56,254 nt of DNA, from positions 32,620,242 to 32,676,495 of the forward strand of contig NC_068989.1 of the NCBI RefSeq assembly GCF_001194135.2. Reading direction: 5' to 3'. This stretch comes from Octopus bimaculoides (lineage: Eukaryota). Below, one piece after another: positions 2,058-56,100 of this stretch (positions within the stretch are counted from its first letter, which is position 1; every line of letters begins with the position of its first letter). Both the position numbers and the translations under genes were made by a program. The notes under the pieces are model-generated. The model saw only the letters and a list, made by a program, of their open reading frames with translations, was not told the DNA's origin and searched no databases.

Positions 2058-3273
2058 TGGAAGCAAGGTCTAGAACTGAAGGGCCTTAGAGTCAACCTAG
2101 CTAAAACCAAAATCCTAATAAGTAGGAAGGTAGATAAAACACAAACCCCTTCAGGTAGATGGCCCTGCTCAGTATGTAGAAAAGGAGTAGGTAGTAACTC
2201 TATAAGATGTACCCGGTGCAAGCTATGGACACATAAGAGGTGCAGCAACATCAAAGGCAGGTTAACTAGCAAGTTAGTTTTTGTTTGTGGCAGATGTTCA
2301 GGTGCAATAAAGACTGTAAACAAACAGGAAACAACTTCTATCTCATTCCAGGGTGAAAAACTAGAGGTNNNNNNNNNNNNNNNNNNNNNNNNNNNNNNNN
2401 NNNNNNNNNNNNNNNNNNNNNNNNNNNNNNNNNNNNNNNNNNNNNNNNNNNNNNNNNNNNNNNNNNNNNNNNNNNNNNNNNNNNNNNNNNNNNNNNNNNN
2501 NNNNNNNNNNNNNNNNNNNNNNNNNNNNNNNNNNNNNNNNNNNNNNNNNNNNNNNNNNNNNNNNNNNNNNNNNNNNNNNNNNNNNNNNNNNNNNNNNNNN
2601 NNNNNNNNNNNNNNNNNNNNNNNNNNNNNNNNNNNNNNNNNNNNNNNNNNNNNNNNNNNNNNNNNNNNNNNNNNNNNNNNNNNNNNNNNNNNNNNNNNNN
2701 NNNNNNNNNNNNNNNNNNNNNNNNNNNNNNNNNNNNNNNNNNNNNNNNNNNNNNNNNNNNNNNNNNNNNNNNNNNNNNNNNNNNNNNNNNNNNNNNNNNN
2801 NNNNNNNNNNNNNNNNNNNNNNNNNNNNNNNNNNNNNNNNNNNNNNNNNNNNNNNNNNNNNNNNNNNNNNNNNNNNNNNNNNNNNNNNNNNNNNNNNNNN
2901 NNNNNNNNNNNNNNNNNNNNNNNNNNNNNNNNNNNNNNNNNNNNNNNNNNNNNNNNNNNNNNNNNNNNNNNNNNNNNNNNNNNNNNNNNNNNNNNNNNNN
3001 NNNNNNNNNNNNNNNNNNNNNNNNNNNNNNNNNNNNTGGCACATAAAAGACACCATTTCGAGCGTGGCCGTTTTCGTGCGGGTGACACGTAAAAGCACCC
3101 ACTACACTCTCTGAGTGGTTGGCGTTAGGAAGGGCATCCAGCTGTAGAAACTCTGCCAAATTAGACTGGAGGCTGGTGTTGCCATCCGGTTTCACCAGTC
3201 CTCAGTCAAATCGTCCAACCCATGCTAGCATGGAAAGCGGACGTTAAACGATGATGATGATGATGATGATGAT
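2058..3273 (+). mobile_element. 5'-truncated RTE-clade LINE (RT C-terminal part, gap, 3' UTR, (GAT)n tail)
   Basis: 2058-2368 reads WKQGLELKGLRVNLAKTK...WPCSVC...CTRCKLWTHKRC...FVCGRC...FQGEKLE in one frame. The 3' end ggaaagcggacgttaaac(gat)n lies at 3037-3273. Confidence 0.9.
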
Positions 3274-4974: not shown

Positions 4975-6600
4975 ATCATCATCATCATCATCGTTTAACG
5001 TCCGCTTTCCATGCTAGCATGGGTTGGACGATTTGACTGAGGACTGGCAAGCCAGAAGGCTGCACCAGGCTCCAATCTGATCTGGCAGAGTTTCTACAGC
5101 TGGATGCCTTTCCTAACGCCAACCACTCCGAGAGTGTAGTGGGTGCTTTTACGTGCCGCCGNNNNNNNNNNCTCCAATCTGATCTGGCAGAGTTTCTACA
5201 GCTGGATGCCTTTCCTAACGCCAACCACTCCGAGAGTGTAGTGGGTGCTTTTACGTGCCGCCGGCACGAGGGCCAGTCACACGGTACTGGCAATGGCCAC
5301 ACTCAAAAAGGTGTTTTTTACGTGCCACCTGCACAGGAGCCAGTCCAGTGGCACTGGCAATGACCTCTATTGAATGATTTTCTAATGTGCTACCAGCACA
5401 AGTGCTAGAAGGCAACGCTGGTAATGATTACGCTCTAATGGTGTTATTTACGGGCCACTAGCACAGAAGCCAGACAGCTGCTCTGGCAATGAACACGCTC
5501 GACAGTGCTGTTAGTGCTCCACTGGCACGNNNNNNNNNNTCAGATTTCAAATTTCAAATTCACTTGACTCAACAGGTCTTCGCAAGCATGGTTTTTAGTG
5601 TCCAATGAAGTAAAGATACGGATTAGTGAGCTGGCCACACTTCTGGCAGAGATCACAGATTATGCTCTCACCTGCCTTGCCGGGTCTTCTCACGTACTAC
5701 ATATTTCCAAAGGTCTCAGTCACTGGTCATTGCCTTGGTGAAGCCTAAATTTCGAAGGTTGTGCTTCACCACCTCCTCCCAGGTCTTCCTGGGTCTACCT
5801 CTTCCACAGGTTCCCTCAACTGCTAGGCTGTGGCACTTTTTCACACAGCTATCCTCATCCATTCTTGCCACATATCCATACCAGCGCAATCGTCTCTCCT
5901 GCACACCACAACTGATGCTTCTTTGGTCTAACTTTTCTCTCAAGGTACTTACACTCTGTCGAGTATGCACACTTACACTACACATCTATTGGAGCATACT
6001 AGCTTCGTTTCTTGCAAGCTTATGCATGTCCTCAGCAGTCACAGCCCATGTATCACTGCCATGTAGCATGGCTGTTCATACATATGTGTCATATAGTCTG
6101 CTTTTACCCTGAGAGAGAGGCCCTTTGTCACCAGCAGAGGTAAGAGCTCTCTAAACTTTGCCCAGGCTATTCTAATTCTAGCAGCTACACTTTCAGTGCA
6201 CCCTCTCCCACTACAAACTTGGTCACCTAGGTAGTGGAAGCTATCAACTACATCTAGTTTTTCACCCTGGAGTGTGGTAAAGGTTGTTTTCTGCACATTC
6301 TCAGTGTTTATTGCTCCTGAGCATCTGCCACATACAAAATCTATCTTGCTAGTTAGCCATCCTTTGATATTGCTGCACCTCTTATGTGTCCATAGCTTAC
6401 ACAGGGTACATCTTATGGAGTTTCTACTTACGCCTTTTCTACAGATCGAAGGGGTTTGTATTTTGTCTACCTTCCTACTTATTAGGACTGATTTTAGCTA
6501 GGTTGACTCTAAGGCCCTTCAATTCTAGTCCTTGCTTCCACACCTGAAACTTCTCCTCTAGTTCTGATAGTGACTCAGCAATTAAGGCAAGGTCATATAT
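4975..6600 (-). mobile_element. RTE-clade LINE 3' portion, degenerate
   Basis: (CAT)n tail at 4975, 3' UTR, ORF pieces EGTCGRGRPRKTWEEVV and YLGDQVCSGRGC. Runs into a gap. Confidence 0.9.
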
Positions 6601-10155: not shown

Positions 10156-10192
<37 letters not shown>

Positions 10193-11035
10193 TCATCATC
10201 GTTTAACGTCTGCTTTCCATGTTGGCATGGGTTGGACGATTTGACTGAGGACTGGCGAGACAGATGGCTGTACCAGGCTCCAATCTGATCCGGCAGAGTT
10301 TCAACAGCTGGATGCCCTTCCTAATACCAACCACTCAGAGAGTGTAGTGGGTGCTTTTATGTGCCACCGACACGAGGGCCAGACAGGCAGTACTGGCAAT
10401 GGCCATGCTCAAATGGTGTTTTTTTACATGCCACCTGCACAGGAGCCAGTCCAGAGGCACTAGCATCGACCTCGCTCAAATGTTATTTTTCATGTGCCAG
10501 TAAGGCGACGCTGGTAACGATCACACTCGAATGGTGCTTTTTACATGCCACTGGCACGGGAGCCAGTCAGCGGCCCTGGCAACGATCACTCTGGGATGGT
10601 GCTCTTAACGTTCCACTAGCACAGATGCCAATCAGGCGGTGCTGTCATCGACTACGTCAGTGAATTTGATTTCAATTTCACTTGCCTCAACAGGTCTTCG
10701 CAAGCCGAGTTTAGTGTCCAATGGTCTTCGCAAGCAGAGTTTAGTGTCCAATGAAAGAAAGGCATGCATAAATGGGCAGGTTACACCACTAGCATAGGCC
10801 ACAGGTTATGGTCTCACTTGGCTTGCTGGGTCTTCTCAAGTACAGCATATTTCCAAAGGTCTTGGTTACTAGTCATTGCCTCGGTGAGGCCTAATGTTCG
10901 AAGGTCGTGCTTCACCACCTCATCCCAGGTCTTCCTGGGTCTGCCTCTTCCACAGGTTCCCTCAACTACTAGGGTGTGACACTTTTTCACACAGCTATCC
11001 TCATCCATTCTCGCCATATGACCATACCAGCGCAG

Positions 11036-12022
11036 TCATCTGTCTTGCACACCACATCTGATGCTTCTGAAGTTTAACGTTTCTCTCAAGGCACTTACAC
11101 TCTGTCGTGTATGCATACTGACATTACACATCCAGCGGAACATACTGGTTTCGTTCCTTGCAAGCTTACACATGTCCTTAGCAGTCACGGCCCATGTTTC
11201 ACTGCCATGTAGCATAGCTGTCCGTACACATGCATCAAACCGTCTATGTTTTACTCTGAGCGAGAGGCCCTTTGTCACTAGCAGAGGTAAGAGCTCTCTG
11301 AACTTTGCCCAGGCTATTCTTATTCTAACAGCTACACTTTCAGAGCAACCACCCCCGCTACTGACTTGGTCACCTAGGTAACGCAAGTTGTCAACTACTT
11401 CTAGTTTTTCTCCCTGGAATGTGGCAGAAGTTGTTCTCTGCACATTTTCAGTGTTTATTGCTCCTGGGCAGCTGCCACATACAAAAACTATCTTCCTAGT
11501 TAGCCATCCTTTGATATTGCTGCAGCTCTTATGTGTCCATAGCTTACACTGGGTGTTTCTACCTATGCCTTTTCTACAGATCGAGCAGGGCCATCTACCT
11601 GAAGGGATTTGTGGTTTGTTTGCCTTCCTACTTATTAAGACTTTGGTTTTAGCTAGGTTGACTCTAAGGCCCTTCGATTCTAGTCCTTGCTTCCACACCT
11701 GAAACTTCTCCTCTAGTCCTGATAGTGACTCAATAATTAGTACAAGGTTGTCAGCATAGGTGAGCTCCCAGGGGCATCTTGTCTGTCTTGAATTCCTGTT
11801 ATTGCCTGGAGGACTGATAAATAGGAGGGGACTGAGGACTGAACCTTGGTGGACCCCTACCTTTACCTGGAATTCTACACTGTACTCGTTGCCAACCCTC
11901 ACCTTACTGACAGCATCCCTGTACATGGCTTGCACAGCTCTCACTAACCATTCATCTATCCCTAGTTTCCTCAAGGACCACCAGATAAGGAATCGGGGCA
12001 CCCTGTCGAAGGTTTTCTCCAT
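11036..12022 (-). pseudogene. RTE reverse transcriptase fragment (degenerate)
   Basis: MEKTFDRVP...GVHQGSVLSPLLF...LTYADNLVL...YLGD. The catalytic YADD reads YADN, and frameshifts are present. Confidence 0.9.
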
Positions 12023-12081
12023 GTTAACGAAGGCCAGGTACAGGGGTTTATCTTTGGCTAGGAATTTCTCCTGCAGCTGTC

Positions 12082-12327
12082 ATCATCATCATTTAATGTC
12101 CGCTTTCCATGCTAGCATGGGTTGGACGATTTGACTGAGGACTGGTGAAACAGGATGGCAACACCAGGCTCCAGTCTGATTTGGCAGAGTTTCTACAGCT
12201 GGATGCCCTTCCTAACGCCAACCACTCAGAGAGTGTAGTGGGTGCTTTTACGTGTCACCCGCACGAAAACGGCCACGCTCGAAATGGTGTCTTTTATGTG
12301 CCACCCGCACAAGCCAGTCCAGGGGCA
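12082..12327 (-). mobile_element. Short 3'-UTR-only RTE copy nested in the RT of a same-family element
   Basis: (CAT)n tail plus UTR splits the host codons FLVRQ|LQEKF. CTGTC occurs at 12077-12081 and 12328-12332. Confidence 0.85.
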
Positions 12328-13727
12328 CTGTCTTACCAGAAATATAGCATCAGTGGTGCTTTTCCCTGGCACAAACCCAAACTGCATCTCGTCTAGACTG
12401 ACTCTCTCCCTAATTAGTTGCGCTACAACCCTCTCCGTGATTTTCATTACCTGATCCAACAACTTGATACCTTTGTAATTATTTGTATCTAATGCATCAC
12501 TTTTACCTTTGTAGCAGTTGACTATGGTGCTGCTACACCAGTCATTGGGTATGACTCCTTCTGGTATCATTACCATGGAATCTAGAAATTCTACAAGCAA
12601 TTAAAATTTACATACTTGTAAAATTTTAATGGTTGGTGAGTGATTGTGATGGTATGAAAGAAGGTTACCTAGTGATGTTTGATTCCACTATTAATGGTTC
12701 CATTGCAGAAATGCAAATCTTAACTCCAACACATATGTATTGTTGAAACACATCTTTTATTCAAGGTAGTAAGTACATCTGAATGGAACAGAAACTTCTA
12801 TAAGCTACAATACAAAAACATTCAGATCAAAAAAGGCTTCAGAAGAGAAATGTTAGCAATCTAAATAATATTAAAAAGTTTGGAACTGATAGATGAAAAT
12901 ATAATATTACTGTGTATAGAATTCCAAATTTTTGAACAACACATGATTATGGTGGCAAAAATATATGCATGTGTACATGTTTGTATGAAATAAAAAATAT
13001 ACACAGCTGTAATAACCAAAAATATGTATACATTTTCAACATGCATGCAAAGTAAAATATTGAAGTGTGTAGAAGCTCAAAGTACATGACAGTCAACCAT
13101 CAAATAAACACTACTGTTTGCATTTTAGAACATAATGCCACAGTATAAACAAAACATAGTATCTATGTCAGACAACACAAAGGCTATTATAAAAAAGCCC
13201 AACAGACATCAACAGCAAAATCTCAAAAGAATGTAATAATGCTAGAGTTACTAATAGAATTTTTAAGGCAGAACAAGAGTGAGACAAAGAATAACAATTA
13301 TAATATTTTTACCTAATGTCTTTTATTCAAGAGTTGGAAATATCTGGTCTGTTATTCTGGTCAACACTTTGTGATAACTTGTGTTGATATGAAGAGAATA
13401 TGGTGTTCTGACATAGAATTGGTATTTTCAGTTGTGAAGTTGGTAAAAGTTGATAAGTAGGAAATTGTTGGTTGCTGTGTTTAGTTCTGTGATGATGACT
13501 GAGTTTTATGGCAACTGGTTGTAATTCTAAAGGTACAGATGTCATGTTTTGTATATACTGTGACCTTACATCTTGCTAACAGTAGTTGATTGTAGTTCTG
13601 AAGACAACTGAGTGATAATCTGCTACGGTATTTGGCTGAAATGTTGAAGTTGAGACTGTTGTCCAGAAAAGGACAAAGAGAGAGTGTCTTACTGACAAAG
13701 AATCTGGAGCACAACTAATTTGTTAAA

Positions 13728-13766
13728 ACAGTTCTATATTTAAATATCCGTCAAATGTAAATAATG
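13728..13766. mobile_element. Minimal footprint of the hammerhead-SINE family (two inverted tail ends only)
   Basis: acagttctatatttaa (reverse complement of the tail end) is joined to atatccgtcaaatgtaaataatg. Flanked by taatttgt(t/c)aaa at 13716-13727 and 13767-13778. Confidence 0.8.
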
Positions 13767-13899
13767 TAATTTGTCAAAGTAAAATATCTGTGCATTTAGT
13801 CTTAAAGACTGCTATCTTTTCCTCTTCAGGCAACTTTGGGTACCAAAACAACATAGATGAAAACAGTAACTGTGGTCTATTAGTAAAAAACGACTTGCA

Positions 13900-16041: not shown

Positions 16042-16347
16042 TCTTTGGGTGTTTAAGTGAAACTTAATAAAATTGATCTTTGAATGTGCAGACAAATTTC
16101 GGTTAGATAAGATTATGTACAAAGATTGGAACTAAAGTAGAGAGATTTGATGATCCAAGAAGAGAAGGAAAATAAGAGAAAAAGATAGAAAGATGCATAC
16201 AAAAAAGTAAAATAATGAAATGAGAGAGAAAGAGAGGAAAGAAATTATCACTGTAAAGAAGAATAGAAATAAAATATGGAAGACATTAATAAATAAGTTA
16301 TGGGAGATATGGAAACATGTAAGTCAGGTAAAACATTGTAGAATAGC

Positions 16348-16617
16348 ACATTATTTACATTTGACGGATATTTGTCCTCATCTTGTTTGTTGCTAACACA
16401 ATGTTTCTGCTGATATACCCTCCAGCCTTCATCATATAATAATAACATTAGAAAATACCTTAGGAATGAAAACCCAGGTTCAAAATTTCCCCAAGACACC
16501 TGATGAAGGCTGGAGAGTATATCAGCCGAAACGTGTTAGCAACAAACAAGATGAGAGCAAATATCCGTCAAATGTAAATAATGTACATAATTCCTCATCT
16601 CTTAAATATAGAACTGT
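16348..16617. mobile_element. Inverted pair of hammerhead-SINE tails with 13-bp TSD (no tRNA head)
   Basis: Left arm 16348-16434 (minus) and right arm 16435-16617 (plus, containing cctgatgaaggctgg...cagccgaaac). attgtagaatagc occurs at 16335-16347 and 16618-16630. Confidence 0.9.
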
Positions 16618-16699
16618 ATTGTAGAATAGCTATAGAGGGAAACAGAACACATTTTCAAGAATGTGCTCAGCTTCCCCAAAGCACATTCTTCAAAATTGG

Positions 16700-27680: not shown

Positions 27681-28378
27681 GTAAGCTGGCAGCAACGTTA
27701 GCACGTCTGGCGAAATGCTTAGCAGTATTTCATCTGCCTTTATGTTCTGAGTTCAAATTCTGCCGAGGTCAACTTTGCCTCTCATCCTTTCGGGGTCAAT
27801 AAATTAAGTACCAGTTGCATACTGGGGTCGATCTAATCGACTGTCCCCCCACCCCAAATTTTGGGCCCTGCACCCAGAGTAGAAAATTAAAGAAACCAAA
27901 AAGCAAGAAAAACTGGGATAAATATTGTTGAAAAAGTTAAGAAATAATAGTAATGGTTTCAAATTTTGGCACAACACTAGCAATTGGGGAAGTGGGGCTA
28001 GTCGATTACAATCAACCCCACTGTTCAGCTGGTACTTTTTTTCTTGCCCCTAAAAGGATGAAAGACGAAGTGAACATTGGTGGAATTTGGACTCAGAAAA
28101 GACAAAATGCTGCGAAGCACTTTGCCTTGTGTGCTAATGGTTCTGCCAATTCACTGCCTTAATAATAGTAATAATGGTTTCAAATTTTGGCACAAGGCCA
28201 GCAATTGGGGAAGTTGGGTAGTCATTTACAATGGACCCCAGTGCTCAAGTGGTACCTATTTTATTGACCATGAAAGGATGAAAGGCTAAGAATTGACATT
28301 CAGAACATAAAGTCAGAAGAAATGCTGCTAAGCATTTTGTCTAGTATGCTAATGATTCTTCCAGCGCACAGCCTTAAA
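27678..28378. mobile_element. Three tRNA-derived SINEs, family B (one plus, two minus)
   Basis: Head gctggcag...gttagcac...ctgagttcaaattc, core gcct(t/c)tcatcctttcggggtc...aagtaccag. Copies at about 27678-27885 (+), 27950-28160 (-) and 28172-28378 (-). Confidence 0.88.
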
Positions 28379-28380
28379 TA

Positions 28381-29240
28381 ATCATCATCATCATCATCAT
28401 CGTTTAACGTCCGCTTTCCATGCTAGCATGGGTTGGACGATTTGACTGAGGACTGGTGCAACCGGATGGCTACACCAAGCTCCAATCTAATTTGGCAGAG
28501 TTTCTACAGCTGGATGCCCTTCCTAACGCCAACCACTCAGAGAGTGTAGTGGGTGCTTTTACGTGTCACCCGCACGAAAACGGCCACGCTCGAAATGGTG
28601 TCTTTTATGTGCCACCCGCACAAGAGCCAGTCCAGGGGCACTGGCAACAATCTTGCTCGAAAACCCTACAAGGCCAGTCAGGCGGTACTGGCAACGGTCA
28701 CGCTCAGGATGGTACATCTTATGTGCCACCCGCACAAGAGCCAGTCCAGGGGCACTGGCAACAATCTCACTTGGCTTGCCGGGTCTTCTCACGCACAGCA
28801 CANNNNNNNNNNCCTTCCTAACGCCAACCACTCAGAGAGTGTAGTGGGTGCTTTTACGTGTCACCCGCACGAAAACGGCCACGCTCGAAATGGTGTCTTT
28901 TATGTGCCACCCGCACAAGAGCCAGTCCAGGGGCACTGGCAACAATCTTGCTCGAAAACCCTACAAGGCCAGTCAGGCGGTACTGGCAACGGTCACGCTC
29001 AGGATGGTACATCTTATGTGCCACCCGCACAAGAGCCAGTCCAGGGGCACTGGCAACAATCTCACTTGGCTTGCCGGGTCTTCTCACGCACAGCACATTT
29101 CCAAAGGTCTCGGTCAGTAGTCATCACCTCGGTGAGGCCCAATGTTCGAAGGTCTTGCCTCACCACCTCAGCCCAGGTCTTACTGGGCTTACGTCTTCCA
29201 CGGGTTCCCTCAACTGTTAGGGAGTGGCACTTTTTCACGC
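28381..29240 (-). mobile_element. 5'-truncated RTE LINE 3' end (contains an assembly duplication)
   Basis: (CAT)n tail at 28381, UTR, C-terminal coding end. About 28515-28802 is repeated after the 10-N join. Confidence 0.9.
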
Positions 29241-29302
29241 ATAATAATGATAATAATAATGATAATAATAATAATCATAGTACCACTTCATCAGTAGAAT
29301 AA

Positions 29303-32107: not shown

Positions 32108-32431
32108 AGGCAGTGAGCTGGCAGAATTGTTAGTACACTGGATGAAATGCTTACCGGTATTTCATTCATCACTATGTTCTGAGTTCAATTCTGCCAAGGT
32201 TGGCATTAATTTTAATCCTTTCAGGATCAATAAATTAAGTATCAGTAAAACGCTGGGGTTTATGTAATTGACTAGTCCCCTTTCCAACAATTTCAGACCT
32301 TGTGTCTATAGTAGAAAGGATTATTATTATTATTATTATTATTAAGGTTATGAGCTGGCAGGATCATTAGCATGCTTGGCAAAATGCTTCATGGCATTTC
32401 ATCCGTCCTTATGTTCTGAGTTCAAATTCCA

Positions 32432-32432
<1 letters not shown>
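32108..32432 (+). mobile_element. Family-B SINE plus a partial second head
   Basis: aaggcagtgagctggcagaattgttag...tagtagaaaggatt(att)n, then a second head truncated at gagttcaaattcca. Confidence 0.85.
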
Positions 32433-33640
<1,208 letters not shown>

Positions 33641-34400: not shown

Positions 34401-34550
34401 TTTATCACTTTTCATTTTGAACTCAACAAAAACAGGCTTGCTGTTGAAATATTGTTCAACCAATAAAATACCTATTGCAATCGCATTGCACTTTTTATCT
34501 TGTCTGTTTACCTTTGTGAAGAGTTATGTCTATCCTTTTAAAATATTATG

Positions 34551-34600
<50 letters not shown>

Positions 34601-35639
34601 GAATGATAATGATAAATATATTTCTTCTCAAAAAAGTACTAACCCTTATATACTGAATAAGGTTATTAATTTTTCCCTAAAATCTGAATTGAATATTGTG
34701 TCTCCTACATTGTTATCTTTGCCATTCTTTAGTCTGTGGTCAATAACTTCAATTATCTGACCTATGTCAGATGTTGTTAGAATAGTTTACAACACATTCA
34801 CTTTTCTATGTTTTGTTGAGATCATCTAGAGTTTAAATCCAATAGGAATTCTTACTATGTCATATTTAATCACCACCTCTGCATTTCTATTCTATCCCTC
34901 CTCAATATTCTTTTTTCCTTTGCCCATTGTGGGCTTTGGTCAATTATCAATACTACTACTAATTCTTGATAGATCCCTCTTCTACAATCTTTCACAGTGT
35001 GGGTGTTCCTTGAGAATGATATATTGGAATTAATTTTTAGATCTATGCAATATTATAATTGATTTAATATGGATTGGTTAACATGCCAAGTCATCACAAA
35101 GTATTATGCAATTCCAGCATATCAGAAATGTACACTGGCAATTTAAATGTTACAAATTGTCAATTAAAATGTGTAAAACCCCATTCTTCTTTGTGCTTTT
35201 TTAAACACAATTTTATATGAAATTATTCAAAGTGAGCTTTGGGTTTACTAATTGAACAGTTGTAAAATTGTAATTATATGGTCTAAACAAATCTTAAAGT
35301 TTATCACCATTTGATCTAGTTAACCAAGTATGGATTACCACAGAGTGCTTAAAAATTATACACCTGGATTTTAAAATCCCTATTTCCTTGTGCTGTGCAT
35401 GCGCACGCACACACAGACACAAACTTGTTACCAGTTCAAATATGCTTGAAGCATACTGAAACCAATAAGAAAGCCATTCACTGTGTTTTGTCATGGAGAA
35501 CAATTCTCACAATAGACAAATAGGTGTAAATATACTGAGTCAGCTCACAGCAACACCTAACCAAACTGTGGGATGCATGCATTTTGGAGTGATTATCTCA
35601 TCTTCAGCCACAGTGACCAAAAAGGGAGGCACTACAAAC

Positions 35640-36340
35640 TGACATGAGGGAACAGGAACGCTTTATGAGTCTCCATATCATCAGTGAAATGGGGCCAAAT
35701 CAGGAGAATAGGGTGGGTGAGCCACATTCACAATCGCAAAACACAGAAGCCATTGAAAGCAAAAACTTGTGTGCTGGAACATTGTCCTGATGAAATAAGA
35801 GTCCTTTCATCAGTTTTCCTGAGTGTCTGGCCTTAATTACCTTTCGTAACTGCCTCGGCAAGTTGATACAGTACTCTCCATTGATGATGTCACCCTTTTG
35901 AAGATAATCAATAAACACAATGCCTGAGGTCATCATTTTCCCTTTAGATGAAACAACCTTGACCTTCTTTGGAGCAAGTGAGGAGGGGTGTTTCCACTGC
36001 ATGGATTGTCTCTTTGTCACTGACTCAAAATGATGAAGCCAACACTCATCATGGGTTAGGAAACATTCAAGGAAACCAGCTGGATCTGCTTCAAACACTG
36101 TCAAGTTTTCCAGTGATGTGATCAGCCTGGTGCGCTTTTGGTCAGGTATCAGATGATTTGGCACCTATTGAGCAGAAACGTTCATCATACCAAGTTCATT
36201 GTGTAGAATATTCTCAACTCTGGAAAGAAAGAATGCAGTTATTAATAAGAACAGCTGAAATTAATGCTTAAAAAATTTCACAGCTATAACATCATTCCTT
36301 CATAGTCAACCTATGAACACTTCAGTCCACCCTTGTATAC
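35640..36340 (-). mobile_element. mariner transposase relic
   Basis: FLTHDECWLHHFE...KRQSMQW...KMM...INGEYC...FHQDNVPAH (first and second Asp motifs). TIR-like tacaagggtggactgaag on the minus strand at about 36320-36339. Confidence 0.9.
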
Positions 36341-45479: not shown

Positions 45480-46560
45480 ATACACAATGTGCACCACCCT
45501 AAAAATAATATCACCAGTCTCTACCTACTAAGAAATGAAGGAGACAGGGGATTATGAAATGTGGAAGACACCATTAGCTATGCAATATTAGGATTGAAAA
45601 ATTATGTTGTATGTAGGAATAAATACTATTGGTGGTTAAAGATGGTCAATAATTACTGAAAAAGTAGGAGAATTCAAGAACAGAGGGGAAAATTATAGAA
45701 TAAGTACATGGAAAAAAAAATGAAATTACATGGCCAATCCATGCAACAAACCAAGGATGCTGGAAGTAAATAGCACTAGTTATGGATAATGGACACAAAC
45801 CTGAAATGAGAAACAAAATCATTAATTATAGTCACTTAGGAATAAGCTATTATGACAAATCTGATAAAGGCAAAGATTGACAAAACTCAGAGAGCAAACC
45901 CAGAATCTGTGGGAAAGGAAACAAAAGTATTAACTATCTCTTGAATTCATGTAGCTTACTATATGAATTCAAAAAGAGTATAAGTGACTGCATGTAAAAG
46001 AGTGCATTGGAGTGTTATCCAAGTGTGTGGCTTTGAAATAACAAATAAGCTAAGCAGTATGAACATAAACCAGGAGCTGTAACAGAGAATAAGAATCACA
46101 TGAATTTATGGGATTTCTTCATAAAAACTGAACATACTATTGAAGCAAGGAGACCAAATATGATTATAGAGGACATAAAAAAACAGTGTAAGATCATAAA
46201 CTTTGCCATACTATATGATAACAAAGTGGATACCAAACAAATAAAAAAATACCAGTGTCTATCCAGAGAGGTTAAAGAGATTGTGGAAGACTAAGACAAC
46301 AATTATTCCTGTGGTCATTAGTGCACTTGGCACAAAACCTAAACTGTGTTACCTAAACTGTTACCTAACAGATTGAATCATTTAAAAAGTGTGGCATCTA
46401 AAAACAACCACTGTACGAGTAAATATTGGAGTTTTGGGGATGATACCAAACATGGTGTTCTTCAATAATATGATCAGATACTTGGAAGACCAAAGTCTTT
46501 AGAACTACACAAAATTGTTCTCATGGATATGGCCCACATTCTCAGAAAACATTGTCATCA
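45480..46560 (+). mobile_element. R4/Dong-like non-LTR relic with restriction-like endonuclease
   Basis: HHPKNNITSLYLLRNEGDRG, KLHGQ, IKAKIDKTQ and LWDFFIKTEHTIEARRPNMII...KCKIINFAILYD...KYQCL...IIPVVISALG. Confidence 0.85.
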
Positions 46561-46674
46561 AAAAAATATTACGGTTTTTTAATGGAGTCTTAATTCAGTT
46601 CTATATTTAAGAGATGAGGAATTATTTACATTATTTACATTTGACGGATATTTGTCCTCATCTTGTTTGTTGTT

Positions 46675-46720
46675 AACACAACGTTTCGGCTGATATACCC
46701 TCCAGCCTTCATCAGGTGTC
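46675..46720 (-). ncRNA. Minimal type-I hammerhead ribozyme (mirror copy)
   Basis: Exact reverse complement of 47033-47078. Confidence 0.8.
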
Positions 46721-46877
46721 TTGGGGAAATTTCGAACCTGGGTTCTCATTCCTAACGATGTTACTATTATTATATTATTATTATTATTTTTATTATTAAT
46801 CAGGTCGCTGCCGTGAATCGAACTCGGAATCTTGGGGTTAGTAGACCGCGCTCTTAACCACTACGCCATATGCCCGT

Positions 46878-46950
46878 GGGCATATGGCGTAGTGGTTAAG
46901 AGCGCGGTCTACTAACCCCAAGATTCCGAGTTCGATTCACGGCAGCGACC
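46878..46950 (+). promoter_or_regulatory. tRNA-derived head with Pol III A and B boxes (mirror at 46803-46875, minus)
   Basis: A box TGGCGTAGTGG at 46885-46895; B box GAGTTCGATTC at 46928-46938. T-arm CCGAG/CACGG. The acceptor stem does not close, so this is not a functional tRNA. Confidence 0.88.
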
Positions 46951-47032
46951 TGATTAATAATAAAAATAATAATAATAATATAATAATAGTAACATCGTTA
47001 GGAATGAGAACCCAGGTTCGAAATTTCCCCAA

Positions 47033-47078
47033 GACACCTGATGAAGGCTGGAGGGTATATCAGCCGAAACGTTGTGTT
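47033..47078 (+). ncRNA. Minimal type-I hammerhead ribozyme
   Basis: Stem I GACAC/GTGTT; CTGATGA at 47038-47044; extra A; stem II GGCTG-gagggtatat-CAGCC; GAAA at 47066-47069; palindromic stem III (AACGTT). Predicted cut after GUU at 47073. Confidence 0.8.
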
Positions 47079-47294
47079 AACAACAAACAAGATGAGGACA
47101 AATATCCGTCAAATGTAAATAATGTAAATAATGGAGTCTTAATTCTTTGAATTTTATCTCCTTTGCCTCACATATGACAGTGTTACCCATAAATAACACC
47201 TACAGTAAGAAGTTTAGCTGACTGTGTCTTGAGGTCTCTGGATTAAACTGCAACAGCTTCTATTAAGCAAAGTGGTATCTAAGCATAATAATGA

Positions 47295-47745
47295 TAATGG
47301 TTTCAAGTTTTGGCACAAGGTCAGCAATTATAGGGGAGGGGTAAGTTGATTACATAAGTACCAGTGTTCAACTGGTACTTATTTTATCAATCCTGAAAGG
47401 ATAAAAGCCAAAGTTGACACTGGTAGCATTTGAACTCAGAATATAAAGACAAACGAAATGCTGCTAAGCATTTTGCCCAGCGTGCTAACGCTTCTGACAG
47501 CTCATCATCCTAAGCATAAAAATAATAATACTTTCTGCTATAGGTACAAGGCCTGAAATTTTTGAGGAGGGGACTTGTTGATTACATCGACCCCAGTGCT
47601 CCACTTGTCTTTATTTTATCAACCCTGAAAGGATGAAAGGCAAAGTTGACCCTGGTGGAATTTGAACTCAGAATGTAATGACGGATGAGATGCTGCTAAG
47701 CATTTTGCCCGGTGTGCTGATGATTCTGCCAGCTCACCACCTTAA
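47295..47745 (-). mobile_element. Two tandem family-B SINEs
   Basis: Reverse-complement heads ...ctgccagctcaccacctt / ...cagctcatcatcct, with B-box tttgaactcag and (AAT)n spacers. Confidence 0.88.
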
Positions 47746-51200: not shown

Positions 51201-51412
51201 TTGCATATACTTATATTTAAGCACAAGGCCCAAATATTTAGTTCTTATGCTCCCTTTTAAACACTAATGTAAACCAAAACAGTAGTTTTGATAACAAAAA
51301 TATCTGTCAAGCTTCCACAGACATTCTAGCCTTCCAATCAGAAATATAATAACAATAACAACAACAACAACAGCAATAATGATGACGACGATGATGATGA
51401 TGATGATGATAA

Positions 51413-52814
51413 TAAGCCTTCCTACTATAGGCACACAAGGTTTGACATTTTGTGGGGAGGTGTATTGTTGATTATATCAACCCAAGTGCTTGACTGGTAC
51501 TTTTTTCCTCGACCCTGAAAAGATGAAAGGCAAAGTCAACCTCAACAGAATTTGAACTCAGAACATAAAAATGGACGAAATGCTGCTAAGCATTTTCCCA
51601 GCATGCTAACGATTCTGCCAATTTGTCGCCTTATTAATAATAATAATAATCCTTTCTACTATAGGCATGATGCCTGAAATTTGGTAAGAGGGGACTAGTC
51701 GATTACATCGACCCCAGTGTTTCACTGGTACTTTTTTCATCGACCCTGAAAGAATGAAAGGCAAAGTCAACCTCGGCAGAGTATAAACTCAGAACATAAA
51801 GATAGATAAAATGTTGCTGAGCATTTTGCTCAGCATGCTAATGATTCTACCAGTTCGCCACCTTAATAATAATGATGATGGTGATGATGATGATAATTTT
51901 GGCACAAGGCCAGCAATTTTGGGGAGAGGGTAAGTCGATTATGTTGAGTCCAGTGCTTGACTGGTATTTACTTTATCAACCCTGAAAGGATGAAAATTAA
52001 TAATGATCATAATAATAATAATAATAGTAATAATGCTTTCTACACAAGGCCTGAAATTTTCAGGGAGTTTGGGGGAGCCAGTAGATTACATCAACTTCAG
52101 TACTTGACTAGTACTTATTTTATCAGCCCTGAAAGATGAAAAGCAAATTTGACCTCAGCAGAATTTAAACTCAGAACATAAAGATGGATGAAATGCTCCT
52201 AAGCAATTTTTCTGGCATGCTAACCATTCTGTCAGCTCTCCACCATAAAAGGTTTCAAATTTTGGCATAAGGCCAGCTATTTTAGAGGAGAGGATAAATG
52301 TAAATCAGTTAAGTCTACCCCAGTACTTGAATGGTGCTTCTTTAATCAACCCTGTAAGTATGAAAGGCAAAGTCGATCTCAGTGGGATTTAAACACAGAA
52401 TGTAAATAACCAAAAGAATTGCCCTAAGCATTTTGTTTGGTGTATTAACAATTCAGCCAGTTCACTCCTTAGGGTTCAAATTTTGGCACAGGACTAGCAA
52501 TTAGTGAGGGAAGGAGAAAGTCAATTACATCAGCTTCAGAACTTGACTGGTACTTATTTTATCAATATCATAAGAATGAAAGCCAAGGTTGACCTCAGTG
52601 GAATTTGAGTTCAGAATGTAAAGACAATCAAAATATCACTAAGCATTATGCCTGGCATGCTAACAGTTCTGCCAGCTCACCATCTTAATAACAATAATAA
52701 TAATAATCCTTTTTACTGTTGGTACAAGACCTGAAATTCTGTGAGGAAGGAACTAGTTGATTACATCAATCCAAGTGATCAAGTGGTACTTTTTTCATCA
52801 ACCCCAAAAGAATT
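51413..52814 (-). repeat. Cluster of seven co-oriented family-B SINEs (five near full, two partial)
   Basis: Copies start near 51413, 51648, 51894, 52033, 52251, 52472 and 52706, mostly separated by (AAT/GAT)n. The last is cut by the Gypsy LTR. Confidence 0.88.
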
Positions 52815-53215: not shown

Positions 53216-54487
53216 TTATCTTTGAGTTAGTGGCACAGTTTCCGAGATCTCCATCGGGTGATCTGTTGCAAATTCAAATACAGTGTCTTCTGCATCACCA
53301 GGTTCATTGTCTTCCTCAGTTGTGTACCGCGGTCGCAGCTGTTCCCAGTGTCGTCTCCACATCGGGCCATGAGGTATGACCCTGACGTTAAAGCAGGGAG
53401 TACCCAATGACTTCTTAATGATTGCTGGTACCCATCGGGGATCTTTGTCTCGGCAAGGTCCATAGTATAGTGCATACACAGGATCTCCGGCCTTGTACTG
53501 CCTGGTAACTTTAGCGACATCAGCCAAGCCTGGAGTCACCTGAGACTTATATGCTTCCTTAGACTGTTTGCTTTGAGCAATGTGTGCTGGTGATGGCAGC
53601 AGAGAATCAATCCTTGTTCGTATCTGCCGGTGATTCAAAAGTTCACTTGGAGAGAATCCACAGGATGTCGGTGTTCTCCGGTACTGCAGAATCCTCCGGT
53701 ACTGAAGTGCTCGTGTCGGCGGAAGAGAACACTTCCTCAAAGCTTGTTTGAAGGTCTGCACCAAACGTTCCGCTGCTCCGTTGGTAGCTGGGTGGTAAGG
53801 TGCCCCTGTCAGGTGTGTGATCCCACGTTCTTTGCACCAGCTCTGGAACTCCTCAGACGTAAAAGTTGGTGCGTTATCGGTGACCAGTGTGTGAGGAAAT
53901 CTGAAGTGCGCAAAGTCTTCTTCAAGCAGATTTAAAGTGGTTTTGGAGGACATGGAGGAAGTAGGATGAATGCATGGATACTTGGAATAAGCATCTGTGA
54001 TCACCAGCCAATCTCTACCCATAAAAGTTATTGCTTGGTCCAGGTGTAAGTGGNNNNNNNNNNATCTCTACCCATAAAAGTTATTGCTTGGTCCAGGTGT
54101 AAGTGGCTCCACGGCTTTTCTGGTAACATCCATGGGTGAACTGGAGGCTTAGATTGCTGCCTTTGGTATTCATTACACGAATCACATCGTTGACTGGCTA
54201 TCTCTATAGCAGCATCGATACCAGGCCAATAAACAGCAGTTCTTGCTAGTTGTTTCATGCGTTCCATGCCAAAGTGTCCAAGATGCAGAAGATTGAGGAT
54301 CTTTGGCTGCAAGCTATGTGGAATCACAACTCTAGATCCATGTATAAGGCATCCATGGCAGATACTGAGTGAGTTTGATAACTTCCGGAACTTGTTGACT
54401 TCGTCATTGATCTCCATGTTCTTTGGTGGCCAGCCTTCACGGACGTAGTGCATCACTGTTGATATCACTACCCTTTGGCCAGGTCAT
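53216..54487 (-). CDS. pol: Gypsy integrase region (HHCC zinc finger + DDE core), split only by a 10-N join
   Basis: HLGHFG...RCDSC, HLD, TDN, TNGAAER. Confidence 0.9.
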
Positions 54488-55401
54488 NNNNNNNNNNNNN
54501 NNNNNNNNNNNNNNNNNNNNNNNNNNNNNNNNNNNNNNNNNNNNNNNNNNNNNNNNNNNNNNNNNNNNNNNNNNNNNNNNNNNNNNNNNNNNNNNNNNNN
54601 NNNNNNNNNNNNNNNNNNNNNNNNNNNNNNNNNNNNNNNNNNNNNNNNNNNNNNNNNNNNNNNNNNNNNNNNNNNNNNNNNNNNNNNNNNNNNNNNNNNN
54701 NNNNNNNNNNNNNNNNNNNNNNNNNNNNNNNNNNNNNNNNNNNNNNNNNNNNNNNNNNNNNNNNNNNNNNNNNNNNNNNNNNNNNNNNNNNNNNNNNNNN
54801 NNNNNNNNNNNNNNNNNNNNNNNNNNNNNNNNNNNNNNNNNNNNNNNNNNNNNNNNNNNNNNNNNNNNNNNNNNNNNNNNNNNNNNNNNNNNNNNNNNNN
54901 NNNNNNNNNNNNNNNNNNNNNNNNNNNNNNNNNNNNNNNNNNNNNNNNNNNNNNNNNNNNNNNNNNNNNNNNNNNNNNNNNNNNNNNNNNNNNNNNNNNN
55001 NNNNNNNNNNNNNNNNNNNNNNNNNNNNNNNNNNNNNNNNNNNNNNNNNNNNNNNNNNNNNNNNNNNNNNNNNNNNNNNNNNNNNNNNNNNNNNNNNNNN
55101 NNNNNNNNNNNNNNNNNNNNNNNNNNNNNNNNNNNNNNNNNNNNNNNNNNNNNNNNNNNNNNNNNNNNNNNNNNNNNNNNNNNNNNNNNNNNNNNNNNNN
55201 NNNNNNNNNNNNNNNNNNNNNNNNNNNNNNNNNNNNNNNNNNNNNNNNNNNNNNNNNNNNNNNNNNNNNNNNNNNNNNNNNNNNNNNNNNNNNNNNNNNN
55301 NNNNNNNNNNNNNNNNNNNNNNNNNNNNNNNNNNNNNNNNNNNNNNNNNNNNNNNNNNNNNNNNNNNNNNNNNNNNNNNNNNNNNNNNNNNNNNNNNNNN
55401 N

Positions 55402-56100
55402 NTAGACAGTTTCTTTTGCAACCTTTGCTGCATCTTCAGTCTCGATGGCAACTTGGACAGCATGGGCAAAATCTAGTTCTGTGTCTTTGATCTTAAAAAG
55501 CGCCTTCAGAACCGCTTCATTGTTGACCGAACATATGAATCTCTGTCTCAGAGCTTCATCCTGTGGGTTGGTAATCGATGGAAAATCACAGGTAGCCGCA
55601 TCCTGACGTATACGTGCTGCCAGCTCCTGGAGAGTTTCGCCTGGCTTCCATTGCATATCACTCCAAAACTTGAAACGCTCTCTCACAATGAAAAGTTTTG
55701 GGTCGAACTGTTCCTTCATAAAGTCAACGATTTCGTCCATTGTCAAGTTGTTGATATCTTTAGGCGTATTTTGTTGAGTAGCCAGATTAGCAAGTTGCTT
55801 GTAAATAGTAGCAGTCTGATTGGTCAGGAACACTTGTGCCATGCGTTGTTCAGGTACAGCATTTGCAGCCACAAACGTGCGGAATCTTGACCATAGTTCT
55901 GTTGTTGAATCAAATGCAGCAAATGGTGGAATCGACACTGTTGTCGAAGCAGCTGAAAAATAGCCACTGGAATCTCCTTCAACTTGTCGGGCACCAAACA
56001 GTTTTAACAGAGTGTCCATATCTCTCTTATGTTGCTGCATTTGCTGTTCCATTTGTTCCCTAAACAACTTTATCAGCTCTACTGTCTGTTTTTTCGCCAT
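55402..56100 (-). CDS. gag: Gypsy Gag N-terminal/capsid region
   Basis: 232-aa open frame upstream of the gap (IPPFAAFDSTTELW...VRERFKFW...ELAARIRQDAATCDF...ALRQRFICSV). Confidence 0.88.

Follow-up and report, generated by a model that had tools for sequence, protein, structure and literature searches.

A tRNA-headed SINE with a minimal hammerhead, inserted head-to-head in Octopus bimaculoides, and a Penelope-type reading of its integration

A palindromic insertion with a single tail

The window analysed here, a stretch of 56,254 nucleotides from contig NC_068989.1 of Octopus bimaculoides, holds a palindromic insertion at 46580-47145. A repeat search identified two inverted arms of 255 nt each (left, 46621-46875, minus strand; right, 46878-47132, plus strand), which are 100% complementary and lie 2 nt apart, with the spacer GT (46876-46877) between their 5' ends. 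They are enclosed by a perfect 17-nt direct repeat (TAATGGAGTCTTAATTC; 46580-46596 and 47129-47145), taken as the target-site duplication. Chance is not a credible source of either the 255-nt perfect inverted repeat or the 17-nt flanking repeat, and the arms, spacer and duplication described in the first-pass annotation were all recovered. The perfect palindrome claimed there holds for the arms but not for their ends: the minus-strand copy has 24 extra nt between arm and duplication (46597-46620, minus strand; sense TCCTCATCTCTTAAATATAGAACT), and this tail, which had been assigned to each arm, is lacking from the right one. The element thus has a sense length of 279 nt, with positions 1-255 in both arms and 256-279, between a proximal and a distal 3' end, in the minus-strand copy only. 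The plus-strand arm overlaps the duplication by TAAT, the first 4 nt of the right copy being shared with the arm end as microhomology. The reconstructed empty target site is approximately 73% A+T. Both arms begin at the identical nucleotide (GGGCATATGG...), in agreement with the 5' end of a monomer at position 450 of Logan contig L014 (GGACATATGG...). Given the 100% identity of the arms, the insertion appears to be recent.

Each arm opens with a tRNA-like head (right, 46878-46952, plus strand; left, 46801-46875, minus strand). The A box TGGCGTAGTGG (sense 8-18; 46885-46895 and 46858-46868) agrees with TRGCNNAGTGG at 11 of 11 positions and the B box GAGTTCGATTC (sense 51-61; 46928-46938 and 46815-46825) with GGTTCGANNCC at 9 of 11; both are sequence matches, and they lie near the 5' end at tRNA-like spacing. 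An (AAT)n-rich linker follows (46953-46989, plus strand; 46764-46800, minus strand), whose length differs among copies. These coordinates and consensus matches confirm the boxes and linker noted earlier in each arm. Read in the sense direction, both arms, linker included, are free of T4 runs. The first candidate Pol III terminators are found in the flanks, a TTTT at 47152-47155 downstream of the plus-strand copy and a T7 run at 46560-46566 downstream of the minus-strand copy, which is an A7 run on the forward strand and not the A6 first reported. ARAGORN at default settings returned 0 tRNAs for the 56-kb window and 6 related contigs, and Rfam gave no tRNA match in the window at the gathering threshold or at E<=10, nor at E<=5 in the six related contigs; what it listed were snoRNA, CRISPR and lncRNA matches at chance level. 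Under relaxed settings ARAGORN reported a malformed tRNA only, and a 5-copy consensus was called 'Ser(act)', with the non-standard anticodon ACT. Because ACT is one substitution from AGT, ACG or GCT, an origin from tRNA-Thr(AGT), as suggested initially, is not established and finds no support in these runs. The A and B boxes nevertheless support the prediction of a degenerate tRNA-like head of Pol III type.

A descriptor of minimal hammerhead ribozymes (min-HHRs) was purpose-written and used to scan the 56 kb and 200 shuffles. It matched exactly twice in the window, once per arm (47033-47078, plus strand; 46720-46675, minus strand), and in 0 of the 200 shuffles, so that the hammerhead proposed for each arm is borne out at the motif level. 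The predicted type-I fold has a helix I of 5 bp (GACAC/GUGUU) followed by CUGAUGA and a bulged A, a helix II of 6 bp (GGCUGG/UCAGCC) with a G10.1-C11.1 pair, and a 3' part GAA-ACGU, in which ACGU is palindromic at 15.2/16.2, without helix III and with U17. Cleavage is predicted at 47073/47074 (plus strand) and 46680/46679 (minus strand). Across 9 copies, the hammerhead pairs are kept in 72% of cells, compared with 33-46% when the pairing is slid, and one CG to GC change is compensatory. The check by curated models that had been proposed came out negative for the hammerhead as it did for the tRNA: no Rfam hammerhead family (type I, HH9 or HH10) matched, even at E<=10 in the window or E<=5 in the six contigs. 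Such an outcome would be natural for models that demand a helix III, as min-HHRs have none. As neither ARAGORN nor Rfam finds them, 'tRNA head' and 'hammerhead' are to be understood as motif-level assignments rather than hits of curated models. With this reading of the terms, the locus is a single insertion with a target-site duplication, in which a tRNA-like, Pol III-type head is fused to a hammerhead-bearing module, as first described.

Minimal hammerheads are a feature of Penelope-like elements (PLEs), on which Lünse, Weinberg and Breaker (2017) is said to be a further reference. Those of PLEs have no helix III, a palindromic 15.2-16.2 region, a G10.1-C11.1 pair, a short helix I and an unpaired nucleotide between A9 and G10.1 (PMC4209133). 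Every feature of the published descriptor (Cervera & de la Peña 2014, PMC4209133) is present in the octopus hammerhead, which is predicted from sequence and lies in a tRNA-headed SINE, whereas theirs lie in pLTRs. We propose that the hammerhead was inherited from a PLE-type module. 'Dual min-HHRs 100-700 bp apart on opposite strands' have been reported in PLEs (PMC4209133), an arrangement that the two octopus motifs share. Cleavage by the PLE min-HHRs described so far is poor and needs a dimer or protein (PMC4209133, PMC11167929), and by analogy the predicted octopus hammerhead is probably not an efficient self-cleaver as a lone monomer.

The 3' module comprises the minimal hammerhead, a stem-loop with a GTAAATAAT repeat and the 24-nt tail. 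In the right arm the tandem GTAAATAAT GTAAATAAT motif occupies 47115-47132 (plus strand), and this tail-less arm ends within the second unit, which marks the proximal 3' end. In the predicted fold, the first 9 nt of the tail pair with AGAUGAGGA (sense 213-221), giving a putative AGAUGAGGA/UCCUCAUCU stem. The fold of the whole element showed no unusual stability (z = -0.2), and interest is confined to local stems.

Further head-to-head insertions and a dispersed family

Two other insertions in the window carry parts of the same element. The second (16335-16630) has the same 3' module, is older and has no tRNA head. It consists of an inverted tail-less arm (16348-16434, minus strand; sense 162-248) and a direct arm with the tail (16436-16617, plus strand; sense 98 to ~282), enclosed by a 13-nt duplication (ATTGTAGAATAGC; 16335-16347 and 16618-16630). 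The third is tiny (13730-13769) and is made of two pieces placed head-to-head, a tail end only (~13730-13743, minus strand; sense ~266-280) and a tail-less piece (13742-13769, plus strand; sense 223-250), flanked by a duplication of ~13 nt, TAATTTGT(T/C)AAA, with one mismatch. The three window insertions are independent, and all are head-to-head. The two arms of the 16.4-kb locus differ in their 5' starts (sense 98 and 162), and those of the 13.7-kb locus share no sense positions (266-280 and 223-250), which together indicate that the second arm was primed independently and was not copied from the first.

The 3' ends fall into two classes. In each of the three insertions exactly one arm bears the tail, and the tail-less arm ends at sense 247-255 (47128-47132, 16348 and ~13767-13769), as do the tail-less copies on contigs L002, L009, L015 and L005; tail-bearing arms end at sense ~279-282. 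The same 24-nt tail closes the direct copy at 16594-16617 and the monomer at L014:~730-755, and it is absent from L002, L009, L015 and L005_R. TAAT/TAA microhomology is found at two of the three tail-less ends in the window; a different reverse transcriptase, guided to an internal priming site by such microhomology, could leave the same trace.

These ends bear on an account in which the second arm is templated by DNA, namely that a single tail-primed cDNA was extended as far as the RNA 5' end, turned back to serve as its own template, and was then joined to the other target end through TAAT. The complete identity of arms 2 nt apart and the TAAT overlap at the right junction are what such a snap-back would leave. 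A loop of 2 nt is too tight for a fold-back primer, however, and a copied arm should continue through the tail, yet the right arm stops at sense 251-255, in the same 9-nt interval where independent tail-less arms stop (16348, ~13769, L002, L009, L015 and L005). Moreover, the inverted arm of the 16.4-kb locus starts 64 nt inside the direct arm, and that of the 13.7-kb locus holds sequence absent from its direct arm. We consider this account unlikely, although less so for the palindrome taken by itself than for the three insertions together.

The first-pass annotation had also counted a bidirectional Pol III unit among the element's properties. The palindrome might be a functional, selected unit that makes ribozyme-bearing RNAs in both directions: the A and B boxes and the hammerhead cores are intact in both arms, and no T4 run intervenes before the flanks. 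The mirror layout recurs with promoter-less, 5'-truncated arms at 16.4 and 13.7 kb, however, so the layout needs no promoters and is explained as a by-product of integration; the right arm, lacking the tail, is also probably the poorer source copy. The identity of the arms is put down to the youth of the insertion, not to any demonstrated constraint. TFIIIB binds approximately -40 to -10 of a Pol III unit. With transcription start sites 2 bp apart, this region of one unit would overlap the A box of the other, which makes simultaneous use unlikely. A selected bidirectional unit is therefore very improbable.

Independent Logan contigs place the element beyond this window. A complete monomer, from head through linker, body and hammerhead to tail, lies at L014:450-755 (78% identity), L013 carries the head together with the body, and the assemblies of four runs (L005-L008) hold another head-to-head pair, of which L005 has head and body. 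The head is conserved in L013, L014 and L005. In L015 the same body is preceded by another head-like sequence, whose A- and B-box matches are weak. The monomer, the second head-to-head pair and the same body behind another head indicate a real SINE family. It is dispersed and multi-copy; head and body travel together, with target-site duplications of 17 and 13 nt in the window. The SRR118693xx contigs have nothing in common with the window except the octopus SINE.

This wider sampling also bears on whether the palindrome is genuine. The perfect palindrome is known from the assembly alone, and an assembler or chimeric reads could have turned a single SINE copy into a hairpin: the window is a gapped scaffold with 10 N runs, short-read assemblers handle perfect palindromes badly, and whole-genome shotgun assemblies are known to have difficulty with PLE structures (PMC8557442). 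The flanks are not mirrored, though, and the single duplication and asymmetric tail are coherent. Two further inverted insertions stand in the same window, and the assemblies of four sequencing runs independently recovered a related head-to-head junction. An artefact is accordingly given very little credence, less than a selected unit. Least probable of all is a DNA transposon of foldback or MITE type whose terminal inverted repeats would be the 255-bp arms; it would account for long inverted arms flanked by a direct duplication. Duplications of variable length (17 or 13 bp) are atypical of cut-and-paste families, monomer copies exist (L014), the outer ends of the arms are unequal, and the arms consist of a Pol III head and a retroelement-type 3' module. 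Two independent insertions were considered as the source of the mirror pair and rejected.

At the protein level, the 51-aa translation of the module matched 167 cluster representatives; antisense and sense module occur together in one ORF in approximately 9 among the 150 matches listed of these 167. An O. bimaculoides UniRef entry that derives from another copy shows 88% identity to the module ORF, and distant relatives in other datasets form tandem units of ~44 aa (~132 nt). Exact-product look-ups of window ORFs put no other instance of the same locus on record, and no family copy was found in O. vulgaris in the 20 kb around a reverse transcriptase homologue. A metagenome scan with the hammerhead 26-mer gave 0 matches, an 'X-group' alignment pattern search gave 600 pattern matches with 0 confirmed, and pattern scans of genome contigs and viral contigs gave 0 matches.

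Penelope-type integration as the probable explanation

We consider it probable that the palindrome records one recent retrotransposition of a tRNA-headed SINE with a ~170-nt PLE-type 3' module, extended from both target strands. Pol III would start at G1 of the head through the A and B boxes and read through the T4-free linker and body. By analogy, a PLE reverse transcriptase with a GIY-YIG endonuclease would recognise the 3' module. Both strands of an AT-rich target would then be nicked 13-17 bp apart, the duplication being observed and the nicks deduced from it, and both exposed 3'-OH ends would prime cDNA synthesis on the SINE RNA. A start at the distal site (sense ~279-282) would give a copy that keeps the tail, and a start at the proximal site (sense 247-255) a copy without it. 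At 46580-47145 both cDNAs would have reached the RNA 5' end and been joined head-to-head with 2 filler nucleotides, giving two identical arms within one duplication. The palindrome and its divergent Pol III promoters are thus most likely a by-product of PLE-type integration.

Several of these steps have published counterparts. [quoted passage not shown] The purified PLE protein PAc, from a lizard, cleaves and extends top and bottom strands, which would account for the mirror pair, and it starts reverse transcription at two adjacent internal sites, the tail being the sequence between them (PMC11167929). With PLE insertions (Evgen'ev & Arkhipova 2005; Craig et al. 2021, PMC8557442; Frangieh et al. 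2024, PMC11167929) the octopus insertions share an inverted partner abutting the 5' end, a short extension on one side with two 3' ends approximately 25-30 nt apart, an AT-rich target and a hammerhead just upstream of the 3' ends. The published copying mechanism explains the layout; the locus is a clean specimen of it, and no new kind of system is needed.

Other features set the element apart from PLEs. It has no reverse transcriptase/GIY-YIG ORF and no pLTR tandem, its 5' part being a Pol III tRNA-like head, and no head-to-tail copy of the module, such as a pLTR-like partial tandem, was found in the window. Several points count against the PLE reading. The octopus tail, at 24-27 nt, is shorter than the 30-40 bp of PLEs; the start motif is an A/T-rich GTAAATAAT repeat, unlike the AC-rich stem-loop of PAc; and no autonomous PLE (with reverse transcriptase and GIY-YIG ORF) sharing the 3' module was found among the proteins and contigs searched. 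No PLE ORF was found in the window, and the module was seen at the N-terminus of a long protein in neither 5.8e9 nor 1.84e9 sequences. The 51-aa ORF was also tried as a PLE N-terminus and rejected, as it matches only short ORFs (34-475 aa) and no protein bearing a reverse transcriptase; the two longest matches (475 and 321 aa) are unrelated repeat proteins.

The element could instead be a LINE-dependent SINE (e.g., of RTE or CR1) inverted by L1-style twin priming, with the hammerhead as a relic unlinked to the mobilising enzyme. Octopus SINEs are generally assumed to be LINE-dependent, and reverse transcriptase fragments of apparent LINE type occur in the window (RVT_1 matches only, whose relatives also carry a PHD domain). 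In L1 twin priming (Ostertag & Kazazian 2001), both target strands reportedly prime on one RNA and yield non-overlapping segments. Priming by both target strands and an inversion inside one duplication are common to that process and the octopus insertions, and twin priming would likewise be compatible with the microhomology seen at two of the three tail-less ends. The octopus arms differ in that they duplicate the same sequence and in that the internal start lies at a fixed site. Twin-priming segments of one RNA do not overlap, whereas the arms overlap fully at the palindrome and largely at the 16.4-kb locus (sense 162-248), so that a twin-priming layout fits only the tiny 13.7-kb locus. Another SINE family in the window ends in (ATT)n, and the element, unlike that family, has no poly(A) or microsatellite 3' end. 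Its (AAT)n linker would have been a better microhomology target and was never used, and the one-sided tail and PLE-type min-HHR are PLE signatures. LINE-driven mobilisation therefore seems unlikely.

Penelope dependence, as first suggested, remains the best reading, given that all hallmarks of PLE min-HHRs, the one-sided tail and the inverted partner come together in 3 of 3 window insertions and in unrelated contigs; the partner itself is deduced from this architecture alone.

Known relatives and implications for octopus SINEs

The schistosome Smα and Sjα elements are SINE-like and combine a Pol III promoter with a type-I hammerhead (Ferbeyre et al. 1998; Laha et al. 2000; in PMC6765202, PMC8490949). 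They are often arranged in tandem, and the hammerhead frees SINE copies from multimeric transcripts (PMC6765202, PMC8490949). Compared by description, they and the octopus family share a short non-autonomous form, a Pol III promoter and a type-I hammerhead, whereas the octopus family is dispersed, with duplications, inverted pairs, a tail and a minimal hammerhead. Smα carries a canonical hammerhead that includes a short helix III. Tandem arrays, presumed to spread via circular RNA, are the form taken by animal non-LTR retrozymes (Cervera & de la Peña 2020, PMC7229834), and for animal hammerhead repeats a status as non-autonomous derivatives of PLEs has been put forward (Li, Clavereau & Pollet 2026 preprint). 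The octopus element likewise is non-coding and AT-rich, has a hammerhead and is proposed to depend on PLEs. It differs from retrozymes, which are built of a tandem unit of ~170-400 nt and have no Pol III head, in its dispersed or inverted copies with a tRNA-like head, and no retrozyme-like tandem array was found in the window. The octopus tRNA-derived SINEs OK, OR1 and OR2 were reportedly described by Ohshima and Okada in 1994. Our family shares their tRNA-derived octopus SINE type, and it might be one of these three or an existing Repbase or Dfam entry. The novelty first claimed for the combination was thus overstated, given the schistosome elements with both a Pol III promoter and a hammerhead and the proposal that hammerhead repeats are non-autonomous PLE derivatives. 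No description of a SINE-PLE partnership was found in the literature searched.

The value of the finding lies in linking known pieces in a new lineage. As a tentative generalisation, which we hold to be possible rather than probable, octopods may have families of tRNA-headed SINEs, transcribed by Pol III, whose hosts for mobilisation are Penelope-like elements instead of LINEs. SINEs make up approximately 11.6% of the Octopus vulgaris genome, where 893 of 900 recently active SINE families are 'unclassified' and 30 Penelope families are recently active. If some octopus SINEs ride on PLEs, the picture of LINE-driven SINE expansion would be incomplete, and repeat classifiers would have no category for such elements. 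The PLE mechanism is still poorly understood, and these elements are handy natural reporters of it: the three window insertions show in a genome the signature predicted from the in vitro work of 2024, with two starts, both strands and a one-sided tail, and if the PLE reading is true they would be an in vivo record of two-start, both-strand priming, which has so far been seen only in vitro and with a single lizard PLE. Every full-length event would then make a perfect inverted repeat at birth, which, if transcribed through, would fold into ~255 bp of double-stranded RNA. Such RNA might be acted on by ADAR or processed into siRNAs, and octopus is noted for extensive RNA editing. Palindromes created at birth by PLE-type integration may also be a source of hairpin RNA and fragile DNA.

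Architecture of the palindrome and two further insertions

The window is a gapped eukaryotic scaffold (36% G+C, 10 N runs over 56,254 nt). A repeat search found two inverted arms (46621-46875 and 46878-47132), each of 255 nt, 100% complementary and separated by 2 nt (GT), together with a perfect 17-nt direct repeat, TAATGGAGTCTTAATTC, at 46580-46596 and 47129-47145, as the first-pass annotation had described. The symmetry that it proposed did not hold, as the ends are unequal: on the left, 24 nt (46597-46620) separate the duplication from the arm, and on the right, arm and duplication overlap by TAAT. The longer copy spans 279 nt in sense, read outward from the centre of the palindrome. It comprises a head (sense 1-75, 75 nt) containing an A box (TGGCGTAGTGG, 8-18, an exact fit to TRGCNNAGTGG) and a B box (GAGTTCGATTC, 51-61, 9/11 vs GGTTCGANNCC), an (AAT)n-rich linker (76-112, 37 nt), a body enclosing the hammerhead (113-255) and a 24-nt tail, TCCTCATCTCTTAAATATAGAACT (256-279). 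A sense scan found no T4 run within either arm copy, in agreement with the earlier reading; beyond the copies, T runs first occur at 47152-47155 (TTTT) and 46566-46560 (T7), the latter at the position reported previously but as A7 instead of A6.

A BLAST search of the window with the element revealed two additional insertions of the 3' module (i.e., the hammerhead-bearing part and the tail). In the insertion at 16335-16630, bounded by a 13-nt duplication (ATTGTAGAATAGC), a minus-strand arm covering sense 162-248 adjoins a plus-strand arm covering sense 98-~282 with the tail. In the insertion at ~13730-13769, flanked by a ~13-nt duplication with one mismatch, the minus-strand piece is the tail end alone (sense ~266-280) and adjoins a plus-strand piece of sense 223-250. 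Head-to-head pieces were thus present in all three window insertions, with the tail on one piece of each pair. The tail-less piece always stopped within the second half of the tandem repeat GTAAATAAT GTAAATAAT (sense 247-255), and TAA(T) was common to the tail-less end and the duplication in two of the three.

Other elements are also present. Another SINE family, unrelated to this one (~210 nt; head GGCAGAATCGTTAGCACGCTGGGCAAAATGC..., B-box-like GAGTTCAAATTC, (ATT)n end), has six copies, at 27690-27990 (+), 32360-32660 (+), 32115-32350 (+), 51320-51625 (-), 47500-47735 (-) and 47200-47500 (-); two of them directly adjoin the palindrome on its right. A LINE-type reverse transcriptase (10186-12600 (-); ORF pieces 11036-12022 and 12226-12600, Pfam RVT_1), whose homologues carry a PHD finger and whose best named match is from Octopus vulgaris (72% identity), has a second copy at ~5543-6527. 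Further features are an LTR-retrotransposon fragment with N gaps inside (53216-56100 (-); integrase core 53216-54022, Pfam rve; upstream zinc-binding part 54028-54468; gag-like ORF 55403-56100), a mariner/Tc1-type transposase fragment (35700-36164 (-), Pfam Transposase_1), and an inverted repeat pair (2338-3195 (-) and 28456-29302 (+)), each member beside an N gap, with a common ORF text (MKPDGNTSLQSNLAEFLQLDALPNANHSESVVGAFTCHPHENGHARNGVFYVP) that had no Pfam match. Microsatellites of (AAT)n/(ATT)n are frequent (34535-34604 and many shorter sites, e.g., 29242-29285 and 51989-52034), and are of the AT-rich kind reported as the preferred target of the endonuclease of Penelope-like elements (PLEs).

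Head, hammerhead and open frame

ARAGORN with default settings predicted no tRNA in the whole window, and Rfam returned nothing in the window at gathering thresholds and no tRNA family at E<=10 in 46400-47350. Relaxed ARAGORN gave at most a malformed 'tRNA-???' on the head, and called the anticodon ACT on a consensus of five heads. To our knowledge, ACT is not among the standard eukaryotic anticodons, several of which are one change away. The malformed call and the ACT anticodon lead us to read the head as a decayed tRNA-derived promoter unit; its suggested descent from tRNA-Thr(AGT) is unsupported.

Rfam hammerhead families likewise gave no match even at E<=10 in 46400-47350, probably because this hammerhead lacks helix III. 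We therefore relied on our own descriptor of minimal hammerheads (min-HHRs), modelled on Cervera & de la Peña 2014 (PMC4209133): helix I >=4 bp, CUGANGA, 0-1 unpaired nt, helix II >=4 bp, GAAA, palindromic 15.2/16.2, U16.1 and H17. Each arm gave one match (47033-47078 (+) and 46720-46675 (-)), the rest of the window none, and 200 shuffles none; the annotated hammerheads stand at motif level, with no curated Rfam match. The motif, GACAC-CUGAUGA-A-GGCUGG...UCAGCC-GAA-ACGU-U|GUGUU, has all four traits given as typical of PLE min-HHRs (PMC4209133), namely an extra nucleotide after A9, G10.1-C11.1, a palindromic centre, and a short helix I with a longer helix II. When hammerhead helices and tail stem were pooled over nine copies, 72% of cells were paired, compared with 33-46% when partners were slid; helix II alone reached 81.5% and showed a single compensatory change (CG->GC). 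In many old copies the core is broken, as would be expected once a copy has inserted.

Published work on PLE min-HHRs indicates that a single one cleaves poorly (PMC4209133, PMC11167929), and the lone motif here is expected to do likewise. Moreover, cleavage at the predicted site (47073/47074) would split the head from the module needed by the enzyme, and the hammerhead is therefore best seen as inherited baggage or a piece of a protein-binding fold.

A 51-aa frame in AT-rich sequence is open from an ATG at sense 127, which precedes the hammerhead by 34 nt, as far as the tail end. Open frames of ~50 codons occur at 46597-46749 (-), 47004-47132 (+) and 16462-16614 (+), the last kept open across an in-frame 3-nt deletion. 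Among 5.8 billion proteins, the only match was an Octopus bimaculoides entry of 51 aa named 'uncharacterized protein' (88% identity), evidently another copy of the module, and protein searches found no long protein with this ORF as its N-terminus. The frame may be open by chance, or may be what is left of the beginning of a PLE ORF, as in PAc, the Anolis PLE studied in vitro.

Relatives in public sequence data

A filter-free phmmer search with the module translation against 1.84 billion representatives yielded 167 matches, nearly all short ORFs. Two peptides conserved among them, PDEGW and QPKRC, are translated hammerhead boxes. The matches split into an octopus-like group and a large, more distant 'X' group (P0122-P0270; consensus ...SRVRQTPEEGRRTYRPKRCGNNNKDEDNSPKNLNDKNQQASSQKFRQ), which includes tandem units of ~44 aa (~132 nt) reminiscent of animal retrozymes. 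Many 'X' members begin with MANGIRTGDPRGFNKG, resembling a translated tRNA T-arm-like sequence. Among the best 150 of the 167 matches, those listed, approximately nine hold the module translation in antisense and then in sense within one ORF, so inverted pairs are common in the wider family.

Nine Logan-assembly proteins were traced to contigs. L014:450-755, which lies in ordinary flanking sequence, is a complete monomer of 78% identity. It has the head, the body with its hammerhead, the tail and an AT-rich linker that is longer than here, and its 5' end, GGACATATGG..., is the nucleotide where both palindrome arms meet. L013 contains head and body, while L005-L008 (four assemblies from four runs) contain another head-to-head pair, with arms 74% complementary and 15 nt apart. 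In L015 (~230-533), the same PLE-type body follows a different head-like sequence (GGGTTAGCAGTGGCTAAAC...GAGTTCAGTCTC, weak A/B-box matches) and an A-rich linker. Head, body and tail thus travel together, and the body also follows at least one other 5' sequence, which suggests that several SINE families share the 3' module. The element represents a real SINE family, most likely of octopods, given the Octopus vulgaris match of the LINE-type reverse transcriptase and the Octopus bimaculoides match of the 51-aa ORF.

Origin and consequences of the mirror pair

Three published observations on PLEs fit this anatomy. First, PLE insertions often have a second, inverted copy, truncated at its 5' side, next to their 5' end, and a tail of 30-40 bp is confined to one end (Craig et al. 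2021, PMC8557442). Second, purified PAc protein cuts and extends the target on both strands, and its reverse transcription begins at two adjacent internal RNA sites, the genomic tail being the stretch between them (Frangieh et al. 2024, PMC11167929). Third, in PLE pLTRs, min-HHRs lie just upstream of this start-site/tail region, and opposite-strand pairs 100-700 bp apart have been noted (PMC4209133). The end pattern, the duplications, the make-up of the family and the motif of the hammerhead are observed here, and PLE-type priming on both strands would best explain the anatomy. We infer that a Pol III transcript of the SINE would be bound by a PLE-type enzyme via the 3' module, and that both nicked target strands would prime cDNA, one at a distal site (sense ~279-282) and one at a proximal site (247-255). 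At the palindrome, both cDNAs would have reached the RNA 5' end and been joined with 2 extra nt; at the 16.4-kb and 13.7-kb loci they would have stopped early. Snap-back copying of one cDNA could also make a second arm, but the arms at 16.4 kb start at different points and those at 13.7 kb do not overlap, which favours independent priming. In the predicted fold, AGAUGAGGA (sense 213-221) and UCCUCAUCU (256-264, tail start) close a loop, with the proximal site at its 3' base. This may recall the PAc stem-loop start site; support from other copies is weak.

The element would thus work like a SINE with a PLE as partner. Of the Penelope dependence proposed in the first-pass annotation, three architectural signatures of PLE-dependent elements are present; the decisive one, a partner sharing the module, did not turn up in the protein searches. 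Its novelty as a ribozyme-bearing Pol III SINE is preceded by schistosome Smα and Sjα, which are SINE-like and combine a Pol III promoter with a hammerhead (PMC6765202, PMC8490949), as does the octopus element, here with the promoter recognized by A/B-box sequence. Animal hammerhead repeats have been proposed as non-autonomous PLE derivatives (Li, Clavereau & Pollet 2026 preprint), and short non-autonomous Penelope elements were reported in butterflies. We found no paper that connects PLEs with an octopus SINE or with any tRNA-headed SINE that has duplications; Repbase, Dfam, SINEBase and the 1994 octopus SINE paper were outside the search.

The palindrome probably serves no designed purpose. 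Truncated pairs that have no promoter are arranged in the same way, which makes the divergent A/B boxes, previously read as a bidirectional Pol III unit, incidental. The two start sites are separated by 2 bp, and on the usual plan of Pol III promoters TFIIIB bound at either unit would be expected to occupy its neighbour's A box. Arms that are 100% identical indicate a recent insertion, estimated at less than ~2 million years assuming ~2-3e-9 substitutions per site per year. The left copy has a complete 3' module, the right copy lacks the tail, and the left copy could act as a source gene. As possible side effects, the palindrome might make the DNA fragile and, should a longer transcript run across it, give rise to a hairpin RNA of 255 bp.
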